64,000 nucleotides of DNA from Entomortierella parvispora E1425. Lineage: Eukaryota; Fungi; Mortierellomycota. Positions 45,299 through 54,998 of the stretch are shown piece by piece. The number at the start of each line of letters is the position of its first letter. The first letter of the stretch is position 1. The stretch lies in assembly GCA_020891255.1 (NCBI GenBank), contig BQFW01000013.1:868001-932000 (forward strand). The letters run 5' to 3'. The translations under genes and the position numbers were made by a program. A model generated the notes under the pieces. It was given only the letters and a program-made list of their open reading frames with translations. It had not been told where the DNA came from and searched no databases.

Positions 45299-47334
45299 CT
45301 AGCTCAAATCCAACCCTGTGCCGTCAATCAAGTGTCGAATCATGACCAAACTGTTGAAGGGCTGGTCCATGGGCGTATAGTGACCTCCGCCCCACATGAC
45401 AATCCGGGTCAGTCCACTTCCATCATCACCACCAGAAGCCTCTGCCTCTACGTCCTTCTCTTTTGTTTCCACCTCCTTCTTTGTCACGCCTCCGGCTGGT
45501 GCGCTGTTCACATACCCAGCCACGAATCCATTCACCTTCCAAATCCTTCTCTTTGATTTCAAGAACGCGTCCTTTCCTTCCCAATCCAAGCCCTCGATCC
45601 ACGGTGTCGATCCAGCTGGTGGGTCCCTGACATCAAACATGCCCTGATAGGCCAACACCTTGACTTTGTTCTTCAAAAGATCTCCCACCAAGGGCTTGGT
45701 GCTCCTCATGATATCGCCTCGCATTGCCTGCTTGACCTGAGGATCCGTCTTGAACTTTGTTTGTTCTCTGCCTTTCTCGATCGCCTGAATTTGTTGATTT
45801 GAGAACCGACTTGGGTTGTTTTTCATATAGGAAGTGCGAGGGCCGTAAATGTTCAAGCTGTCCTTGGTTTTGGGCAAGTTCAAAAACTGATCCATAAGAC
45901 GCCAGTTCATGGGGTGCGATCCTTTCCGGATATCAAACGTGTTGAGCTCGGTCGCATTTCGGAACATGTTGAAGATCTTGCCACGGTATCTGTTCGCTTC
46001 CAGGAACTGTCCCTTTTCCACCAAGGAGACGGCCGAGCGCTGATGTTCTTTCATCAACTTCCATTCGTCCGAGGTCAAGAGGCCCAGGTAATAGGCTTGG
46101 TCGGCATAGTACTGGATCTGAGTGATGGGGTCCGTCATGGAGTTTCCGAGCGAGAGGCCTTTGATGGGGATCACGGCCTTTTTGGGTGTCGGAAACGCGG
46201 ATGTGGCAACTGGGGACGGGTCCTCCTCGGCAAGGTCCTTTTGACTGTAGCGTTTGTTTCTCTCCATGATAGCATGGGCGATCGAGGGCACGAATTTTCC
46301 GGCGTAACTTTGTCCTGCAATGTAGAGATCCGCCTTGAGTTGTTCTGGATACCGCTCATAAAACTGATCCAGTACAAAGAGCATGTCCTGGACGACTCCG
46401 GCCTCGTCCTTCACAAATCCGCCCTCTGTAAAGCTAGACGAGTTTTGCTGTTGACGGTCCTGTTTACTGGCCAGAGATTTGGCATAGAACGACTGGTCAG
46501 GCGGGAGGCTGGAGAAGAATGCCGATTCACGCTCCTGATCCTTTTCTAATTCTCTATCCAGATCATCTTTGGAGCGCGTTTCCTTCTCGTCTTCATCGTC
46601 GTCGCCATCGTCGTCATTGTCCTTATTTTTGGAACCCTTCTTCTTCTTCTGTGCATCGCCATTGTCCACGAAACTGAATCCTGTGCCCACGGGCTGATCA
46701 ACAAAGAGCATCGAATATTCCTCCGCCCAGGTGTTGTTGTTCCGGGCCAGCTTCATGTTGTCCGTCATCTTGATCGGTCCGTTTTCGTAAAAAAGTCCAA
46801 TCATTGAGCTACTTCCAGGACCTCCCTGGAGCCATCTTTATATTTGAAAAAAGAGCAACAAAAGCCGTTAGGGCACTCTTTATGTAAAAAGCATCACCCT
46901 CCTCCAGTCTCCAATGCAAACTTACATGATCAAAGGTGGGTTTTTGACCTTGGGCTTGATGGCAGGAAAAAACCAGTAGAATCTAGTACGATCAAGCAGA
47001 TGAGAGACTTGGCATCAGAACAACCACAGCAATAACCCAAAAGCGCGCGCACGAGAAAGACTCGGTCCTCATCTTACGTGCGGGCATCGCCCATCTTGCC
47101 GTCTTTTAGTTTCCACTCTCGGGTTTGAAGATGACCCGCGTAGCTCTCCTGAATGGGCGTCTGCCCCTTATCCCATGGCAAGGGTCCAACGCGTTGTTCT
47201 TGTCGATCGTATGTCATCGCCGCTACCCCTGCGTGAGCGGCCGATGTCAAGAGAATAAACGACGGGGGCGAGGAGAATGAGGAGGCCAGGAGAAGGGACA
47301 GTGGCAGCGCACTGAGGATCGTCCTGCACATCAT
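45299..47334 (-). CDS. Secreted serine carboxypeptidase, family S10
   Basis: Exons 47334-47078, 46982-46926 and 46835-45299. Signal peptide, [50 protein letters not shown], catalytic Ser motif GQSYAGKF and His motif GGHYTPMDQP. Confidence 0.92.
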
Positions 47335-48974
47335 TTGGATCCGGCAAAGGGCGGACGTGCGTGGATTGAAGTTTGTGAAAGAGAAGAAAGAGAAACAAAG
47401 AGGAAGGCGAGAGACCAGAGAGATCGGGGCAGAACTGAGGACGACAGATCGCATGGAAGCGAAACAATAAAAAAAAAAATGGTCTCTCGTGTTTTTGGTG
47501 GCGATGAGCGTCGTTCTGATCCATCCACATGTCAGCCTCTCGTCACTGAATTTCGGCACATTGGTCGTGATGCTGTTCGCACAACAGACATCCATCTCTC
47601 TCCCTCCCTCCCTCCATTTCTCTCCCTTCCTCCCTCCCTCTCCCTCTCTCTCTTCCCTCGACAACGAGGGAAAAAGTGTGCTGCGTGCTGATCTCGAGCA
47701 GGGACAGGGTGGTGATGGGCAAGAGACACACAGGCGCAGCTCTTTCTTCCCTCTTTCTCGCCCTTTGCACTGCACCCTTGGCCGTGTTTGCCAATAAAAG
47801 AGGCTCACGGCCGCTACTATTATTCAACAATTGCCCCTCAGTAAAGCTATATAGTTCCTCTGGGTGGACGTCTTAATCAGACGGCTGTCAAATATCTCGT
47901 ACCTGGATAACAGAGTTTCAACAGCACGGAGCTCCACATGTCCACTTCGTGCTATGGACAAAACTTTTCAGTGGACGAGCCTATGTAGAAAAACAACAGC
48001 GACGCTAGCCAAGTTGTGGTTAGCAGTGAGCGACCATGCCCCTGAAGTAAGAATGACTGGTCGCAACGTGAAAAGTCCTGCAGCGACAACATGACCGTCC
48101 CAGGGAGCAGCGACTGCTTGACTTGGAGGTCCGATCGGATAACCGCTTTGTGAAGGAGACAATGACAGACAGTTGGACACCACCTCACCCTCAGTAGTCT
48201 AGCAAAGAACATCCACGATCTTGAATTGCTTGGCATCGAAACTCAAACTCCCTTGTTGCTATGGACGGAATCCAAGTTGGAGTTCTGTCGCGTAGTGCCG
48301 TCTACGCTACCCAGAACACCTAATCTGCAGACGAGGACTCGCTGCTTCTACGACGGCCTGGAGGGTACTGGACCTCAATGGCCCAACTCAAGAGTGGGGT
48401 TACGCAGAGACCTCGCCGCGCCTCGAGCTTCCCATCGAACTTTTATATCCCGTTGTCGACAGCATTTTTTCACCGTCTGTTGTCGGGTATTGCTCAAAAA
48501 CGAGACGGTGCCACTGCGAGAGGATGAAGAGTCGTCCATTCATCCAACAATTGTGCAGCTTAGGCCAGCCCGACTCTATTGTTGGTTGGTCTTGTCACTG
48601 ATCATCTCTCCCTGTCTGACACTGCTGCATGCCCGAGTGTCAACAATGGGTCGCATCCCGTTCGCAGTTGATTGCCGCACGTTCCAAAAGAATCCGGAAA
48701 AAAATCTAGAATTTCATCAATTGTTGTTCGTTGCAAAGTTTCCCTTCTTTATGTATTTCTGGTTGTGCTGTCGTATAACTGAGAGTATCGTTATATTATT
48801 GCGATGGAAACCTTGGTTACAATTGAAACAAATCCTTAAGCCACGATAGAGGGAGCTATGATCAAAGGATTTCGTCTTGGGGTGATTGCTAACAAGCCGC
48901 CTTGAATAGATATAAGATGGACAAACTCAGTGAACTCGGTACAACTGAACTGAAGTCGCAACCTGCATTCAATA

Positions 48975-49005
<31 letters not shown>

Positions 49006-49073
49006 TGACATGGAATAAAGCGAAAACATACAGTCCAGACTCCGCCAGTATACCAGCCCTGGGAGTGACCAAC

Positions 49074-50539
49074 CTATTTTTTGCTGGAAAATTGATTGAC
49101 CAGAGAGGAAGAGAGGAATAAGGTCATCATGTTAGTTACAATCTTGCAATTGCAATTGTCATGTCTTCGGCGTTATGAGCAATTAGTAGGATTGTCTTAC
49201 AGGCTGATTAAGAAGAAAAGAAACACCAGGGAGAAATACAGGTGGCCATGTTAGTTCCAATGTGGCGATTGTCATGTCTTCGTCGTTATGAGCAACTAGC
49301 AGACATGACGTACTCGCTGATTGAGAAGAACAGAAACACCAAGGAGAAATACAGGTGGCCATGTTAGTTCCAATGTTGTGATTGTCATGTCTTCGTCGTT
49401 ATGAGCAACTAGCAAACTTGACGTACATGCTGATTGAGAAGAACAGAAACACCAAGGAGAAATACAGGTGGCCATGTTAGTTCCAATGTTGCGATTGTCA
49501 TGTCTTCGTCGTTATGAACAACTAGCAAACCAGACGTACTCTCTGATTGAGAAGAACAGAAACACCAAGGATAAATACAGGTGGCCATGTTAGTTCCAAT
49601 GTTGCGATTGTCATGTCTTCGTCGTTATGAGCAACTAGCAAACTTGACGTACATGCTGATTGAGAAGAACAGAAACACCAGGGAGAAATACAGGTGGCCA
49701 TGTTAGTTCCAATGTTGCGATTGTCATGTCTTCGTCGTTATGAGCAACTAGCAAACTTGACGTACGCGCTGATTAAGAAGAACAGAAACGCCAGGGATAA
49801 ATACAGGTGGCCATGTTAGTTCCAATGTTGCGATTGTCATGTCTTCGTCGTTATGAGAAACTGACAAACTTGACGCACGTGCTGATTGAGAAGAACAGAA
49901 ACACCAGGGAGAAATACAGGTGGCCATGTTAGTTCCAATGTGGCGATTGTCATGTCTTCGTCGTTATGAGCGACTAATGGGTTTGTCTTACAGGCTGATT
50001 GAGAAGAACAGAAACACCAGGGAGAAATACAGGTGGCCATGTTAGTTCCAATGTTGCGATTGTCATGTCTTCGTCGTTATGAGCAATTAGAAAACTTGAC
50101 CTACTCGCTGATTGAGAAGAACAGAAACACCAAGGAGAAATACAGGTGGCCATGTTAGTTCCAATTGTGCGATTGTCATGTTTTTGTCGTTATGAGCAAC
50201 TAATGGGTTTGTCTTACAGGCTGATTGAGAAGAACAGAAACACCAGGGAGAAATACAGGTGGCCATGTTAGTTCCAGTGTTGCGATTGTCATGTCTTCGT
50301 CGTTATGAGCAACTAGCAAACTTGACGTACATGCTGATTGAGAAGAACAGAAACACCAGGGAGAAATACAGGTGGCCATGTTAGTTCCAATTGTGCGATT
50401 GTTATGTTTTTAATCGACTGCTGGTGTTCATCCAGAGGCACCTGTAGTCTTGCGCTTTCCTATTCTATTCAACTTACGTTGGAGCAGCAATTGTTAGACC
50501 TAGAAAGGCAACAAGGACAAGAAGGAATTCGATTTTCAT
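49074..50539 (-). CDS. Predicted micro-exon gene: signal-peptide exon, eleven 3-nt exons and a short terminal exon, encoding a 34-aa secreted peptide precursor
   Basis: Exon 1 is 50539-50478 (MKIEFLLVLVAFLGLTIAAP + AC, then GTAAGT). The 3-nt exons start at 50333 CAT, 50220 CCT, 50107 CGA, 49994 CCT, 49881 CAC, 49768 CGC, 49655 CAT, 49542 AGA, 49429 CAT, 49316 CGA and 49203 CCT. Each is flanked by AATCAG and GT-R-N-G. The terminal exon is 49083-49074 (C AAA AAA TAG). Product: MKIEFLLVLVAFLGLTIAAPTILDLTAIDIDLKK. No transcript evidence available. Confidence 0.7.
49128..50410. repeat. Tandem array, period exactly 113 bp, about 11.5 copies
   Basis: The marker AAATACAGGTGG begins at 49234, 49347, 49460, 49573, 49686, 49799, 49912, 50025, 50138, 50251 and 50364, with every spacing 113. 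About 85 nt per unit are near-invariant and about 25 nt are variable. Confidence 0.98.
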
Positions 50540-50643
50540 TGAAATGTGGTTGGAGCTTAAGTTTGTTTGAAGTAGTTTGAACAAGGTCAAGATGGAGGGG
50601 AAGATGTGGATCATGCGACGGTCGTGGCAAAAGAAAATGGTGG

Positions 50644-50651
50644 TATTTAAA
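50644..50651 (-). promoter_or_regulatory. Candidate TATA-like element for the micro-exon gene
   Basis: Minus strand reads TTTAAATA about 105 nt upstream of the ATG at 50539, followed by a C/A/T-rich leader. Confidence 0.3.
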
Positions 50652-51479
50652 GGGCTCAGAGAAAAGAAAATGTCAGGGATGAAGATCAAAACTGGCATTG
50701 TTTTTCAGGAGATGATCAAAGGGGCAGGACTCCCCCTGTCCTTACTTTCTGGGAGGGAGCACTCAAAGGGGCATCTCCATGTCTTTACTTTCAGGGAGGG
50801 AGCACACAAGGTTAGATCACAGTCGTTCACTTTTACTCAGTTGCAGATGTCAGATTGCTGCAGCAAGCTGCTTTCCTTTTTTGTCAAAGAATGGTTGACG
50901 TCAACCGCTGGGTGTGGAGAGCATGAAGAACTCGATTTTGGGGCGCTGGAGTGTTCATTTGAAGCACTGGAGAATGGCTGGTGAGAGTGCGTCTTGTGTG
51001 TCTCTGTGAGTCTTCATTACTCCTTGCCGAGTTCTGACCATCATCCACTCAAAGCAAGCGTACCCTGGCGTTTCTCCATAAAAAAAAAAAAGTGGGGACA
51101 GGGAAGAGGGACAATGGGAAGACCTGCATCTCTTTTCATCATCATCATGCACACAGTGCACGTCAAGACACGTCCTCTACATGTACGCTGTTAAGAAAGT
51201 CGAGCTGTATGACTGGAAGGCGGCTTGTGGTTGTGTATCAACGGCACACCAAAAAAAAAAAAAAAAAAAAAAAAAAATAGATGGCGCCACCCGTTGCCGA
51301 TGGTTATGAGAATGGTCCTCCTCCTCCACATCTTTGCTCCCGCTCATGCTCCGCTTCAATGGTTGTCATTGCTGACTCGTACTTCAGCCTCACGCTGGAC
51401 ATCTTTCCCCTGAAAAAAACGGGGGGAAAGTGGCTGCGTGCTGATAATGGAGGACAGGACGGTGATGACAGAGGCATGG

Positions 51480-52087
51480 ATGACCTGCCTTGGGTGCTAG
51501 ACCTCACTGAATATACCCCACTCTCGACAACGAAAGTGAATTGTGAAGAGGCTTTTCATACGCAACCGCCAGCTCACGCGAGCCTGCATATCTATCAGGT
51601 GCAGGAGGGAGTTGATCGAGCTCACAAAGCATGCAGAGAGCTTGACCTGGGAGATTTGGCAGATTGATGGACAAGAGATTGATGGACAGGAGTTGAGCGA
51701 TCCGGGTTCAGATTCCAAGAGGGTGACCATTTCGGCGCCAAACGTCCCTTTTGTGAACTCGACTTTTCCAGTCAGAATCAAATCCAGTTGTTTAATTTGG
51801 ACTCGATGAAGAGATTCTTCGTGGACGACGATCAACCAACAGGATCTCCGTGTTTTCAAGTGTGGGCCTGGAGGTAGCCACTCTTGAGATGGAGGGTTAT
51901 TGGTCAGTGCCGTCTATCAGCGGCTTGGCCCTTGGTCAAACTCCAGTATCCGCTTCATAAAATGCAGATGACGCGCACTCTCGATCTTCGATGGATCGTG
52001 CATCGGATCGGCGTGCCTGAGCTAGAGTGGCTGAGCAAGCTTTGGCCAGATCTCTGTGCCCTATTTGGCCTGGCAGACCTACTCTAG
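51480..52087 (+). pseudogene. Second decayed LRR/F-box-type C-terminal fragment
   Basis: Family-like motifs are scattered over different frames: LPWV at about 51486, RELDLG at about 51635, and LHKMQMTRTLDLRWIVHRIGVPELEWLSKLWPDLCALFGL ending at the stop at 52087. This implies frameshifts. The assignment is from recall of motif shape, not a search. Confidence 0.45.
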
Positions 52088-52625
52088 GTGCTGGTCCGCT
52101 CCGTATCCTTAGTTCTGACCGTGCTGCTGATTGGGTCGTTCCTCCATCCACGCGAAGTTGGACGCAGTCACTATAGCTCTGCCTGTCCCCAATTCCTTTG
52201 TATATTTCTAGCTGCCAGTCGAATATACCTCCTGCGTATTTGCCAACCCCTCATTTGTTCTCTACCACACTGGCTTTCTACTATATATTTTTGAGGAGAA
52301 CAAAAAAAAAGTAAGTCTTTTCCGATCCATGAGGTGAGGTGGATGTGGTATGAGGTGATCGAAAGACATGGCACCTTTCAAAGCATTGAAAGGAATGAAG
52401 CATGAGCCACGTAGCTCGTGGAAACATGAGCAAGTCAAGAGGAGGAAGGCAATGTTCACGGAGGGATGAAAAATGAAAAAAAAAAAAAAAAAAAAAAGGA
52501 GGACGCTCTTGGACGCGCCAATACTTCGCGTCTATTTTTTGGTTTTTTTTTTTATTCTTTTTTTTTTTCTACAAATTCTCAGTTGCTTTTTGCTTTTTTG
52601 GACAGAGTATTTTTGAACGGGTAAA

Positions 52626-54998
52626 CTAGTTCAACAACAAGTGAATGGCGTGGGAGGGGACGCCATTGTTCAACATGTGGATATAGTGAGGACCTGGAGG
52701 CATGATGTTGGCGTTGGGGGGCATGTCGACCTCATAAGTGAACTTTGTGCCCGTGGTCGAGCTTCCTTCCTTCAAGGTCGCCACGAGCTTGGTCATCCTC
52801 TGGGACATGTGAGTGCTATGGGTCACAAACCCTTTGTGACCCAACATAAACACGACCTCAGGTTCGTACCGGCTCACGTCCTTCAGATCCACCACCAACT
52901 CGAGCTTTTGAGCATAGGTCACTGGCACGGGCTTGGCCTCGTTCGTCGTCACCTTGTTCTGGAAGAAACCCTCGGTCAAGACAATCTCGGGCCGGGCCAG
53001 ATCCGTGGTCAGGTAAGGGGGCGTGAAGGACTCGACTCTGTACTCGGTGGGGAAACGCACGTAGGGTCGCTGATGCAACGACAACTTGGTGCGTACCTCA
53101 CTGTTCTCGTTCGAACCCGCGACAAAGACAGAGCCATCGGGCAACAACATGGCCACAGAGTGATACATTCTGGCAATGTTGCTGGGGACCCACTCTGTGA
53201 AGCGGGAGCCCAGAGGTGCTTGAGGATCATAGATCAAGGGCGTAAAGTTGGGATCGTTGCCGTGCAAGAATCCAGCGAAACCGGTCTGGCAACCGTTGAG
53301 GAGCATGACTTTGCCATCGGCCAAGATGATGGCATCGCCCATCAAGCGACGACTGGGCATCTCGTCCATCTCCCATTGAGGGTCTGGGTCGGCCAAGTTG
53401 ATGCGTCCGCAGGTCTGCAGGGCCTTTGAGTTTTGTTCCATACGTTCCGATCCTCCACAGACCAAGATCTCGTGTGCGTAACCCTTGGCAGGGTCGAGGG
53501 GCAAGAGCACATGGGATCCCGTCAAGGGGTAGGAGCGAGGTCCTCCAGGGATATCGGGCAATCGACGGACGACCTCATTGCGGGCCACATTGAAAATCAT
53601 GGACTTTGTGTTGGCAAAGATATAAATGTCTCCACTGGGCAACGAGTAGACGTTGGGGTACAAGTTGTTGGGCAGAGCATCGACCATGAACTGCATGAAG
53701 TTGGGCTTGTAATCCGCGGCTGGCTTGGGCTTTGGGTACAACTCCCACGTTGGGTTATTGTACGCGTTCGCATTGATCGCCAAAGACTCGTTACTGCCTC
53801 CCAGGATAAAGAGCTCTCCAGAGGGCAGTGTCGTGATCGAGACGTACCAGCGGTTGCTCGTCATCATCCACTCGCGGTCGTTCGGGTTCTCGATCCATGC
53901 TCCACAATTCTCACCCTCACAGGGCAACCACATTCTCAAGGACTGGAAACCATCCTCGGGTCTGAAGGCCCTTGAGTTTCGAACCTCGGCACCTCCAGCA
54001 CTGATAAAAGTACCGTTGGGCAAGAAACCTCCACCAGAGCAAAAAGTGTTGGTCCTCACCTCCAAGGTTCGGAAGTCGTTTCGGGTCAGGTCGTACTCGG
54101 CATTGTAGGCCGAGAGACCGTTGGGGAGCTTGGGAGGGTTGGCCTCGGCCTTGTCAATGATCAACATCTTGGTCGGCGAGATCAAGACAATGTGTTGGGC
54201 CGCCACACCGGTCTGGCCCACGACCTTGAACGCTCCCTTGGGCAAGGAAGGGACGGGCTTGGGCTTTCCGCCGTTCGTGGTGATGTCGCTCAGGATGAAG
54301 CGTTCGCATCGACCATTGAAACTAGCTGATGCGTCACAGCCTGCGCTGCAGGCCAGAGGCGAATTGCCGCAGTGGCCATGCTACAGATAGAAAGGAAGGC
54401 GAAAGAAAAAAAAATATATAAATAAAAAAAGGCGTAGGGGTGGGGTGAGGTTGAGTATGAAATCGCGTGCAACGGAGAACAGGGCTGTGTGGGTGGTGTT
54501 GCACTGAGTTGATTTGTATTGTGACCAGACAGGCAATCAAGGCCAAATAGAAACAACACGAGAATGGGGTGTTGTTTTGTTCCGGGTATCTGGAATTCTG
54601 AGGGCGGTTGGTGGGATCAAGTCGCACTGTTACTGTCCGTTAGCCTCGAGGCAGTAGAGGCAGACGAGTTTGGAATATGACACAGTGCACGAGACGAATG
54701 GCGGAGGAATGAGATGCGAGCGTGTAAGGAATGCGCGGGGGGAGGAATGAGCAGGCGACAGTGTTTGAGGTGAGGGAACGTCGACGGTGGAGAGCGGGGG
54801 GACTAGAAGAAGGTAAAGGGGTCAATGGCTTACAGAACTGCAGCAGGGTGTCTCTTGCGGACATGCCAGTCCGTTGTTGTACTTGCAGCCTGCACCGTCG
54901 ACAGGGGCAACGACACAGACCGCAGACAGGACAAGGGCCGTCGTTGCCAGGAACCAGCCTAGCTTTCGGGTCATCTTGGTTGCAGAAATTATTGCCAT
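52626..54998 (-). CDS. Secreted copper radical oxidase (AA5, glyoxal/galactose oxidase fold) with an N-terminal hevein/CBM18-like chitin-binding module
   Basis: Exons 54998-54834 and 54380-52626. After a signal peptide, the junction-spanning sequence reads CPQETPCCSS|HGHCGNSPLACSAGCDASASFNGRC. AA5 active-site motifs are NTFCSGG (Cys), NRWYVS (Tyr), RMYHS (Tyr-His) and THSTHMSQR (His). Confidence 0.9.

Follow-up and report, generated by a model that had tools for sequence, protein, structure and literature searches.

Background

Splicing that resolves single codons is known from the truffle Tuber melanosporum, whose nank genes (NACHT-ANK, coding for NLR-like proteins) carry tens of codon-sized micro-exons and are reported to be diversified by alternative splicing (PMC4986451, PMC3689799, PMC13449251). 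A second described system is the micro-exon genes (MEGs) of Schistosoma, which encode secreted proteins from a signal-peptide exon and many short exons with lengths in multiples of three; these exons measure 6-81 bp and mostly 15 bp, the introns between them are long and dissimilar (100-5000 bp), and alternative splicing is thought to be the source of variation (PMC10526429). We report here on a locus of the soil fungus Entomortierella parvispora (assembly GCA_020891255.1, contig BQFW01000013.1), which we read as an unannotated, lineage-specific micro-exon gene with eleven consecutive exons of 3 nucleotides (nt) each. It runs on the minus strand from 50539 to 49074 of a 64-kb window, i.e. the whole stretch of DNA that was analysed, to which all our coordinates refer. 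The original source on the truffle nank genes is said to be Iotti et al. (2012, Fungal Biol 116:261), and the micro-exon genes of Schistosoma were reportedly treated by DeMarco et al. in 2010.

The locus is similar to the truffle genes in that a fungus uses many consecutive one-codon exons, a choice among which is, for nank, proposed to diversify the protein. We found eleven consecutive 3-nt intervals between complete introns, at the DNA level and with one RNA-like contig. The nank genes encode large intracellular NLR-like receptors of an ascomycete and have reported alternative splicing, whereas here we predict a 34-residue pre-peptide of secreted type in the Mortierellomycota, at a locus known from DNA and one RNA-like contig. 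No NACHT-ANK host protein is encoded here, the product being 34 residues long and no long open reading frame (ORF) being present. Splicing diversity at codon resolution is not new as a principle, and the locus differs from the truffle and schistosome cases by its tiny peptide of secreted type built almost wholly from micro-exons, its tandem near-identical introns and its place in the Mortierellomycota. Our literature search found no paper linking Mortierella with micro-exons.

The likeness to the schistosome MEGs lies in the exon design. All 11 internal exons are symmetric (3 nt), so that skipping would keep the frame. The first exon, encoding MKIEFLLVLVAFLGLTIAAP, may code for a signal peptide, as judged by eye, and has further in-frame ATGs upstream. 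Unlike the MEGs, the exons here are exactly 3 nt and the introns are near-identical tandem copies of 110 nt; the two are unrelated in sequence and come from different kingdoms of organisms.

Recursive splicing uses ratchet points with a juxtaposed acceptor and donor, as in Drosophila Ubx and in the long introns of vertebrates. As at these points, an acceptor is here followed almost at once by a donor, so the removal would be stepwise. A ratchet point, however, is a zero-length exon within one long intron from which nothing is kept, while 3 nt are kept per step here between each CAG and GT and would be translated. Near-identical introns can also be created by duplication, as described for intron gain through tandem genomic duplication and for the introner-like elements of fungi (PMC4974935, PMC4457414). 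Those cases concern single new or dispersed introns, whereas here an intron together with a 3-nt exon has been amplified head to tail in one gene, and, unlike introner-like elements, it has no dispersed copy in the 64-kb window.

The micro-exon array

The gene, as read from the sequence, consists of a signal-peptide-like exon, 12 introns, eleven 3-nt exons and a terminal exon. We judge it somewhat more probable than the contrary that this is a real spliced gene with the full-length peptide as its default product. The underlying array is far beyond chance by two measures. Tandem Repeats Finder gave a 113-bp repeat at 49150-50407 with 11.1 copies, 90% matches and a score of 2012, the sole large tandem array of the window, and a 29-mer derived from the introns occurs 11 times in the window, always inside this array, with 0 occurrences expected. 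On the minus strand each repeat unit has full spliceosomal signals over 110 nt (an initial GT, ACTAAC ~45 nt before the end and a pyrimidine-rich tail with CAG as its last bases) and then exactly three further bases. ACTAAC occurs 7 times in the window outside the array.

The 12 introns have lengths of 144 nt, ten times 110 nt and 117 nt, and all of them show the pattern GT..ACTAAC..CAG. The original prediction held that all introns are in phase 2, and they are: the 62-nt coding part of exon 1 ends in AC and is followed by eleven 3-nt exons. It needs a sole correction, namely that the gene is on the minus strand. A plus-strand gene or a long ORF through the array was considered and rejected, as no long ORF exists on either strand.

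Our proposed mechanism starts from the tandem amplification of the 113-bp unit, by which one 3-nt exon and one 110-nt intron would have been multiplied together. Each intron would carry full splice signals and be removed individually. Adjacent introns would probably be removed successively, since no more than 3 nt separate each 3' splice site from the 5' splice site after it, and the default output would be the full-inclusion pre-peptide of 34 residues. With splice sites this close together, some skipping is likely for mechanistic reasons, as it is by analogy with the truffle genes, so a heterogeneous output would be plausible. Eleven consecutive 3-nt exons would put models of splice-site pairing to an extreme test; with just 3 nt between them, a donor and an acceptor could hardly be bound simultaneously, and the gene would therefore reveal an ordered removal of introns.

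Variation among the repeat units

The variation among the units is concentrated on exon bases 2-3. We compared the 10 full units over 113 columns, i.e. 112 adjacent column pairs, and no other pair reaches the pairwise diversity of exon bases 2-3 (0.70). The value falls to 0.26 at intron positions +7..+22 and to 0.04 over the other 88 nt. Variable columns make up 19 of 25 versus 12 of 88 (Fisher 7e-9), the eleven signal columns (GT, ACTAAC, CAG) are invariant (P = 0.024), and no unit has any indel. Unit 6 (CGC) and unit 1 (CAT) illustrate the pattern, as they differ at both exon bases 2-3 and at only 1 of the 110 nt in the introns that follow. The 110-nt introns in general are ~92-96% alike. 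Introns that are homogenised or very young beside differing triplets would be expected from selection on the encoded residues, and the pattern argues that the triplets matter. It also suggests that each triplet position may have its own identity, which would be more in keeping with one defined peptide in a set order than with a random mixture. Types of unit come back in no fixed order, namely CCT with GTAAGACAA (positions 2, 4 and 11) and CAT with GTACGTCAAGTTTGCTAG (positions 1, 7 and 9).

Conservation is far stronger in the introns than in the exons, which could be read in another way. The introns themselves might be the product, with the locus acting as a host gene for the release of an intronic RNA of 110 nt in eleven copies and the triplets as mere spacers, and tandem clusters of intron-encoded RNAs are known elsewhere, e.g. 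SNORD115/116. We consider this very improbable. The introns match no Rfam family at E <= 1, their folds are no stabler than those of shuffled sequences (z -0.3 to +1.0), and inspection found no box C/D or H/ACA layout, so a structured or known RNA in the introns was rejected and the introns, unlike those of SNORD115/116-type hosts, have no recognisable structured small RNA. Such a product would also leave the signal-peptide exon and the in-frame stop unexplained.

Predicted peptide and possible exon skipping

Full inclusion of the exons gives a pre-peptide of 34 residues, MKIEFLLVLVAFLGLTIAAPTILDLTAIDIDLKK, which ends in TILDLTAIDIDLKK. It would consist of a signal peptide, recognised by eye, and a 14-residue tail, (AP)TILDLTAIDIDL-KK. 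Exon 1 shows by eye a charged n-region, an 11-residue hydrophobic core and small residues at -3/-1 (T-I-A), and the predicted signal peptide points to secretion of the peptide. If the peptide is made, the gene would stand for a class of small secreted products wholly missed by standard annotation, and for peptides built residue by residue through unit duplication.

All parts of the gene lie on the minus strand. The coding part of exon 1 (50478-50539) reads MKIEFLLVLVAFLGLTIAAP plus AC and ends in ..GCTCCAAC. It is followed by intron 1 (50334-50477, 144 nt, GTAAGT..ACTAAC..CAG), of which the 3' ~70 nt are part of the repeat, and by micro-exon 1, CAT (50331-50333), which completes Thr and starts Ile. 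The next three introns, each of 110 nt with ACTAAC and a terminal CAG, are intron 2 (50221-50330, GTACGT), intron 3 (50108-50217, GTAAGA) and intron 4 (49995-50104, GTAGGT). They alternate with micro-exon 2, CCT for Leu (50218-50220), micro-exon 3, CGA for Asp (50105-50107; Glu only when joined to exon 8), and micro-exon 4, CCT for Leu (49992-49994). Introns 5 to 7 are built in the same way (49882-49991, GTAAGA; 49769-49878, GTGCGT; 49656-49765, GTACGT; 110 nt each) and lead to micro-exon 5, CAC for Thr (49879-49881), micro-exon 6, CGC for Ala (49766-49768), and micro-exon 7, CAT for Ile (49653-49655), which is read ATA since exon 8 begins with A.

Introns 8 to 11 are again 110 nt long (49543-49652, 49430-49539, 49317-49426 and 49204-49313). 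The micro-exons downstream of them are AGA for Asp (micro-exon 8, 49540-49542, the sole exon starting with A), CAT for Ile (micro-exon 9, 49427-49429), CGA for Asp (micro-exon 10, 49314-49316) and CCT for Leu (micro-exon 11, 49201-49203). Intron 12 (49084-49200, 117 nt, GTAAGA..ACTAAC..CAG) is the last intron and more diverged than the others of the array. The terminal exon opens with CAAAAAATAGG.., and its coding part C-AAA-AAA-TAG (49074-49083) completes Leu and adds Lys, Lys and the stop. The micro-exons in order are thus CAT CCT CGA CCT CAC CGC CAT AGA CAT CGA CCT, and joined together they make 33 nt, CATCCTCGACCTCACCGCCATAGACATCGACCT.

The original prediction described the exons as a combinatorial code, and its arithmetic agrees with ours. 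It listed the final dinucleotides of the micro-exons as AT, CT, GA, CT, AC, GC, AT, GA, AT, GA and CT, which matches the sequence exactly, and the first base of the next exon as C in 10 of 11 cases (the terminal exon counted) and A once, which is exon 8. Our enumeration confirmed that one cassette specifies one residue nearly irrespective of its neighbour, with Glu as the exception that arises only when exon 3 (CGA) is joined directly onto exon 8. Skipping was said never to shift the frame or create a stop, and in the exhaustive enumeration all 2048 inclusion patterns are in frame and none has a premature stop. The 2^11 patterns were expected to give fewer distinct peptides, and the enumeration yields 1298 distinct mature peptides, 3 to 14 residues long.

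The stop-proof and frame-proof property is no evidence of a purpose. Frame safety is automatic because the exons are 3 nt, and the neighbour independence follows because the first exon base is a conserved C inherited by all the units, so both are by-products of duplication. The absence of TA and TG among the 12 dinucleotides has a chance probability of P ~0.30, given the local dinucleotide composition. The property is real but trivial, being the arithmetic of the architecture; it has almost no evidential weight and adds little to the significance of the locus. Frame-safe modularity protects the gain, loss and exchange of units at the DNA level as well as the skipping of exons at the RNA level.

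Exon skipping could be frequent and used, in which case one locus would secrete peptides variable in length and sequence, in up to 1298 forms. Every subset of exons is in frame and free of stops, and neither the 5' nor the 3' splice sites inside the array differ much from one another, which would let each donor pair with every acceptor downstream of it; the gap between acceptor and donor is 3 nt, so neighbouring introns are probably not engaged together by the spliceosome. The MEGs of Schistosoma vary secreted proteins by alternative splicing (PMC10526429). We nevertheless regard frequent, used skipping as unlikely. The proofness is without statistical weight (P ~0.3), and the exons keep their identity amid homogenised introns, which would fit an ordered peptide better. 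Short introns of fungi are normally paired across the intron, and this pairing favours the nearest acceptor. A library of hundreds of secreted peptides, made in this early-diverging fungus by stochastic or regulated skipping of single codons and possibly tuned by conditions such as contact with bacteria, is a plausible hypothesis with published precedent, and we hold it to be quite unlikely as well. If skipping is used, the locus would be a second and independent case of fungal splicing diversity at codon resolution after the NLR-like genes of truffles, here for an exported peptide.

RNA-like sequences from the locus

The predicted splice sites appear to be in use, based on one contig. A search for RNA runs using the locus sequence listed none, and a search by the neighbouring genes led to three sequence sets: X1 (DNA of the source strain), X2 (from the same sample) and X3 (from a relative ~10% diverged). 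X2 behaves like RNA-seq, as its depth is 561 over the glyoxal oxidase gene and 0-13 outside it, with many places at 0. Its record 12 (165 nt, depth 3.3) has a 116-nt match to 49201-49316 with zero mismatches, the unit-specific variable bases included, and this span is exactly micro-exon 10, intron 11 and micro-exon 11. The match ends exactly at both outer exon edges, and on the upstream side it breaks off at the 3' end of intron 10; 9 unmatched letters lie upstream and 40 downstream. A genomic or unspliced molecule would have aligned onward through the shared intron sequence at both edges.

The 40 downstream letters can be placed by the depth profile of X2. The depths of the bins 49364-49560 (3.36) and 49167-49363 (3.10) are reproduced exactly from records 11 and 12. 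The bin 48970-49166 (1.75) is reproduced only with the 45-nt piece of record 11 and exactly 40 nt at depth 3.3. The latter fall into the bin of the terminal exon, and therefore the remainder of record 12 would join 49201 directly into that bin, as predicted for the removal of intron 12. We infer that record 12, one low-depth contig, stems from a partly spliced RNA that had lost introns 10 and 12 and still contained intron 11. A retained intron between two removed neighbours would fit the removal of the introns one by one. The original prediction of a micro-exon gene is supported by the variation on exon bases 2-3, by the invariant GT, ACTAAC and CAG, and by the X2 contig breaking at the exon edges.

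Record 11 of X2 is a separate observation. This 354-nt contig over 48816-49503 is ~90% alike and so belongs to a paralogous array. In it, intron-like sequence meets terminal-exon-like sequence precisely where 49083 would be, and the two pieces are separated by the six letters CTCCCT, which make two triplets. It may be a partly spliced transcript of the paralogue or reflect the genomic layout of the paralogue.

Several points weigh against a functional spliced gene with the 34-residue product. X2 is labelled 'DNA?' in the run listing, and its sole informative contig has a depth of 3.3 and retains intron 11; the joint of this contig to 49083 comes from depth arithmetic and was not read as letters. 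The X2 depth is zero over 49561-50348. Neither a full-length spliced transcript nor a skipped isoform is found among the X2 contigs. The exact 34-residue product is absent from a collection of 15 billion proteins. The 5.2-kb block that contains the locus is absent at the syntenic place in a relative, which leaves no evidence of conservation at the site. At the 5' end, an X2 contig ends at 50538, inside the ATG, and continues into an Illumina adapter. This end may be the end of a fragment or the start of the transcript, and in the latter case the frame would be left without its start codon. Further upstream, ATGs in the same frame stand at 50698 and ~50613 with no intervening stop, and these could displace the signal peptide. 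A TATA-like TTTAAATA, found by inspection at 50651-50644 on the minus strand ~105 nt upstream of the ATG, lies between the two upstream ATGs, and as a putative promoter element it would place the start between them.

Some of these points would also be expected if the locus were a minisatellite mimicking a gene or a decaying gene copy, with rare, poorly spliced and degraded transcripts and no peptide. The RNA depth is very low, the retained intron of the sole informative contig puts a stop in frame, a contig ends inside the ATG, and the locus is unannotated and absent at the syntenic place in the relative. We give this explanation a low probability, as 12 of 12 introns keep GT, ACTAAC and CAG, exon 1 reads as a signal peptide in a frame that runs to a stop after the first 7 nt of the last exon, and the variation is concentrated on the coding triplets.

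Relatives and genomic context

The sequences indicate that the gene family exists in relatives and that this copy sits in a lineage-specific block. The sole close relative reached through the glyoxal oxidase neighbour, L001 (~82% nucleotide identity), is colinear with our window on both flanks of the block but does not have the 5.2-kb block, and record 15 of X3 skips 47507-52610, which is the same absence of the block. Another X3 contig has two units behind a piece resembling exon 1, and the units in record 17 of X3 differ from those of our array by 8-16%, compared with ~4-8% within the array. Together with the recurring unit types, this greater similarity within the array would point to gain, loss and exchange of units at the DNA level.

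Modularity at the DNA level may thus be the main source of diversity, through unequal crossing-over and gene conversion between the near-identical introns, by which single codons would be gained, lost or reshuffled, with each array encoding one peptide. We hold this tentatively, as a possibility a little short of an even chance. The exact 113-bp units with zero indels and introns far more alike than the exons speak for it, and so do the unit types recurring out of order (CCT at 2, 4 and 11, CAT at 1, 7 and 9). The 8-16% versus ~4-8% divergence suggests concerted evolution or a recent expansion, and the relative lacks the 5.2-kb block altogether. Diversity would then be expected between paralogous arrays and between strains. 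Such modularity is compatible with the favoured reading as a spliced gene with a full-length default product. RNA skipping, however, is also compatible with it.

Our searches for the origin of the block and for further arrays gave negative results. The edges of the 5.2-kb block show neither inverted repeats nor target duplications, and the 64-kb window has no further copies of the block. A scan of metagenome contigs with a 20-mer of the most conserved portion of the intron gave 0 matches, a search for related arrays through a spurious 59-residue ORF inside the units gave no candidate, and a 74-residue ORF over exon 1 is not on record by exact look-up.

The block lies between two annotated genes. 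The NCBI annotation has zero genes in 47334-52626, between the glyoxal oxidase and the S10 carboxypeptidase, and ~240 nt replace this block in L001. Record 16 of X3 has the outer parts of the block and skips 48401-51932. The glyoxal oxidase (copper radical oxidase) gene at 52575-54245 (minus strand) is the one with depth 561 in X2, and the best matches of its product placed the organism in the Mortierellaceae. The next gene downstream of the array, at 45299-47334 on the minus strand, is an S10 serine carboxypeptidase with a gene model of 616 residues. Some enzymes of the S10 family trim basic residues off the C-terminus of secreted peptide precursors. Lys-Lys is the C-terminus of the predicted peptide, and this match to the S10 neighbour is possibly a coincidence.

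The probable 3' untranslated region extends over 48812-49073 on the minus strand, an extent suggested in part by the X2 contigs over 48812-48965, which partly belong to the paralogue. It includes a T9 G14 homopolymer tract at 48979-49001 (C14 A9 on the plus strand). Other homopolymers in the neighbourhood are A27 at 51251-51277 and an A-rich tract of ~24 nt at about 52474-52497. The short-read contigs break at the tracts 48979-49001 and 51251-51277.

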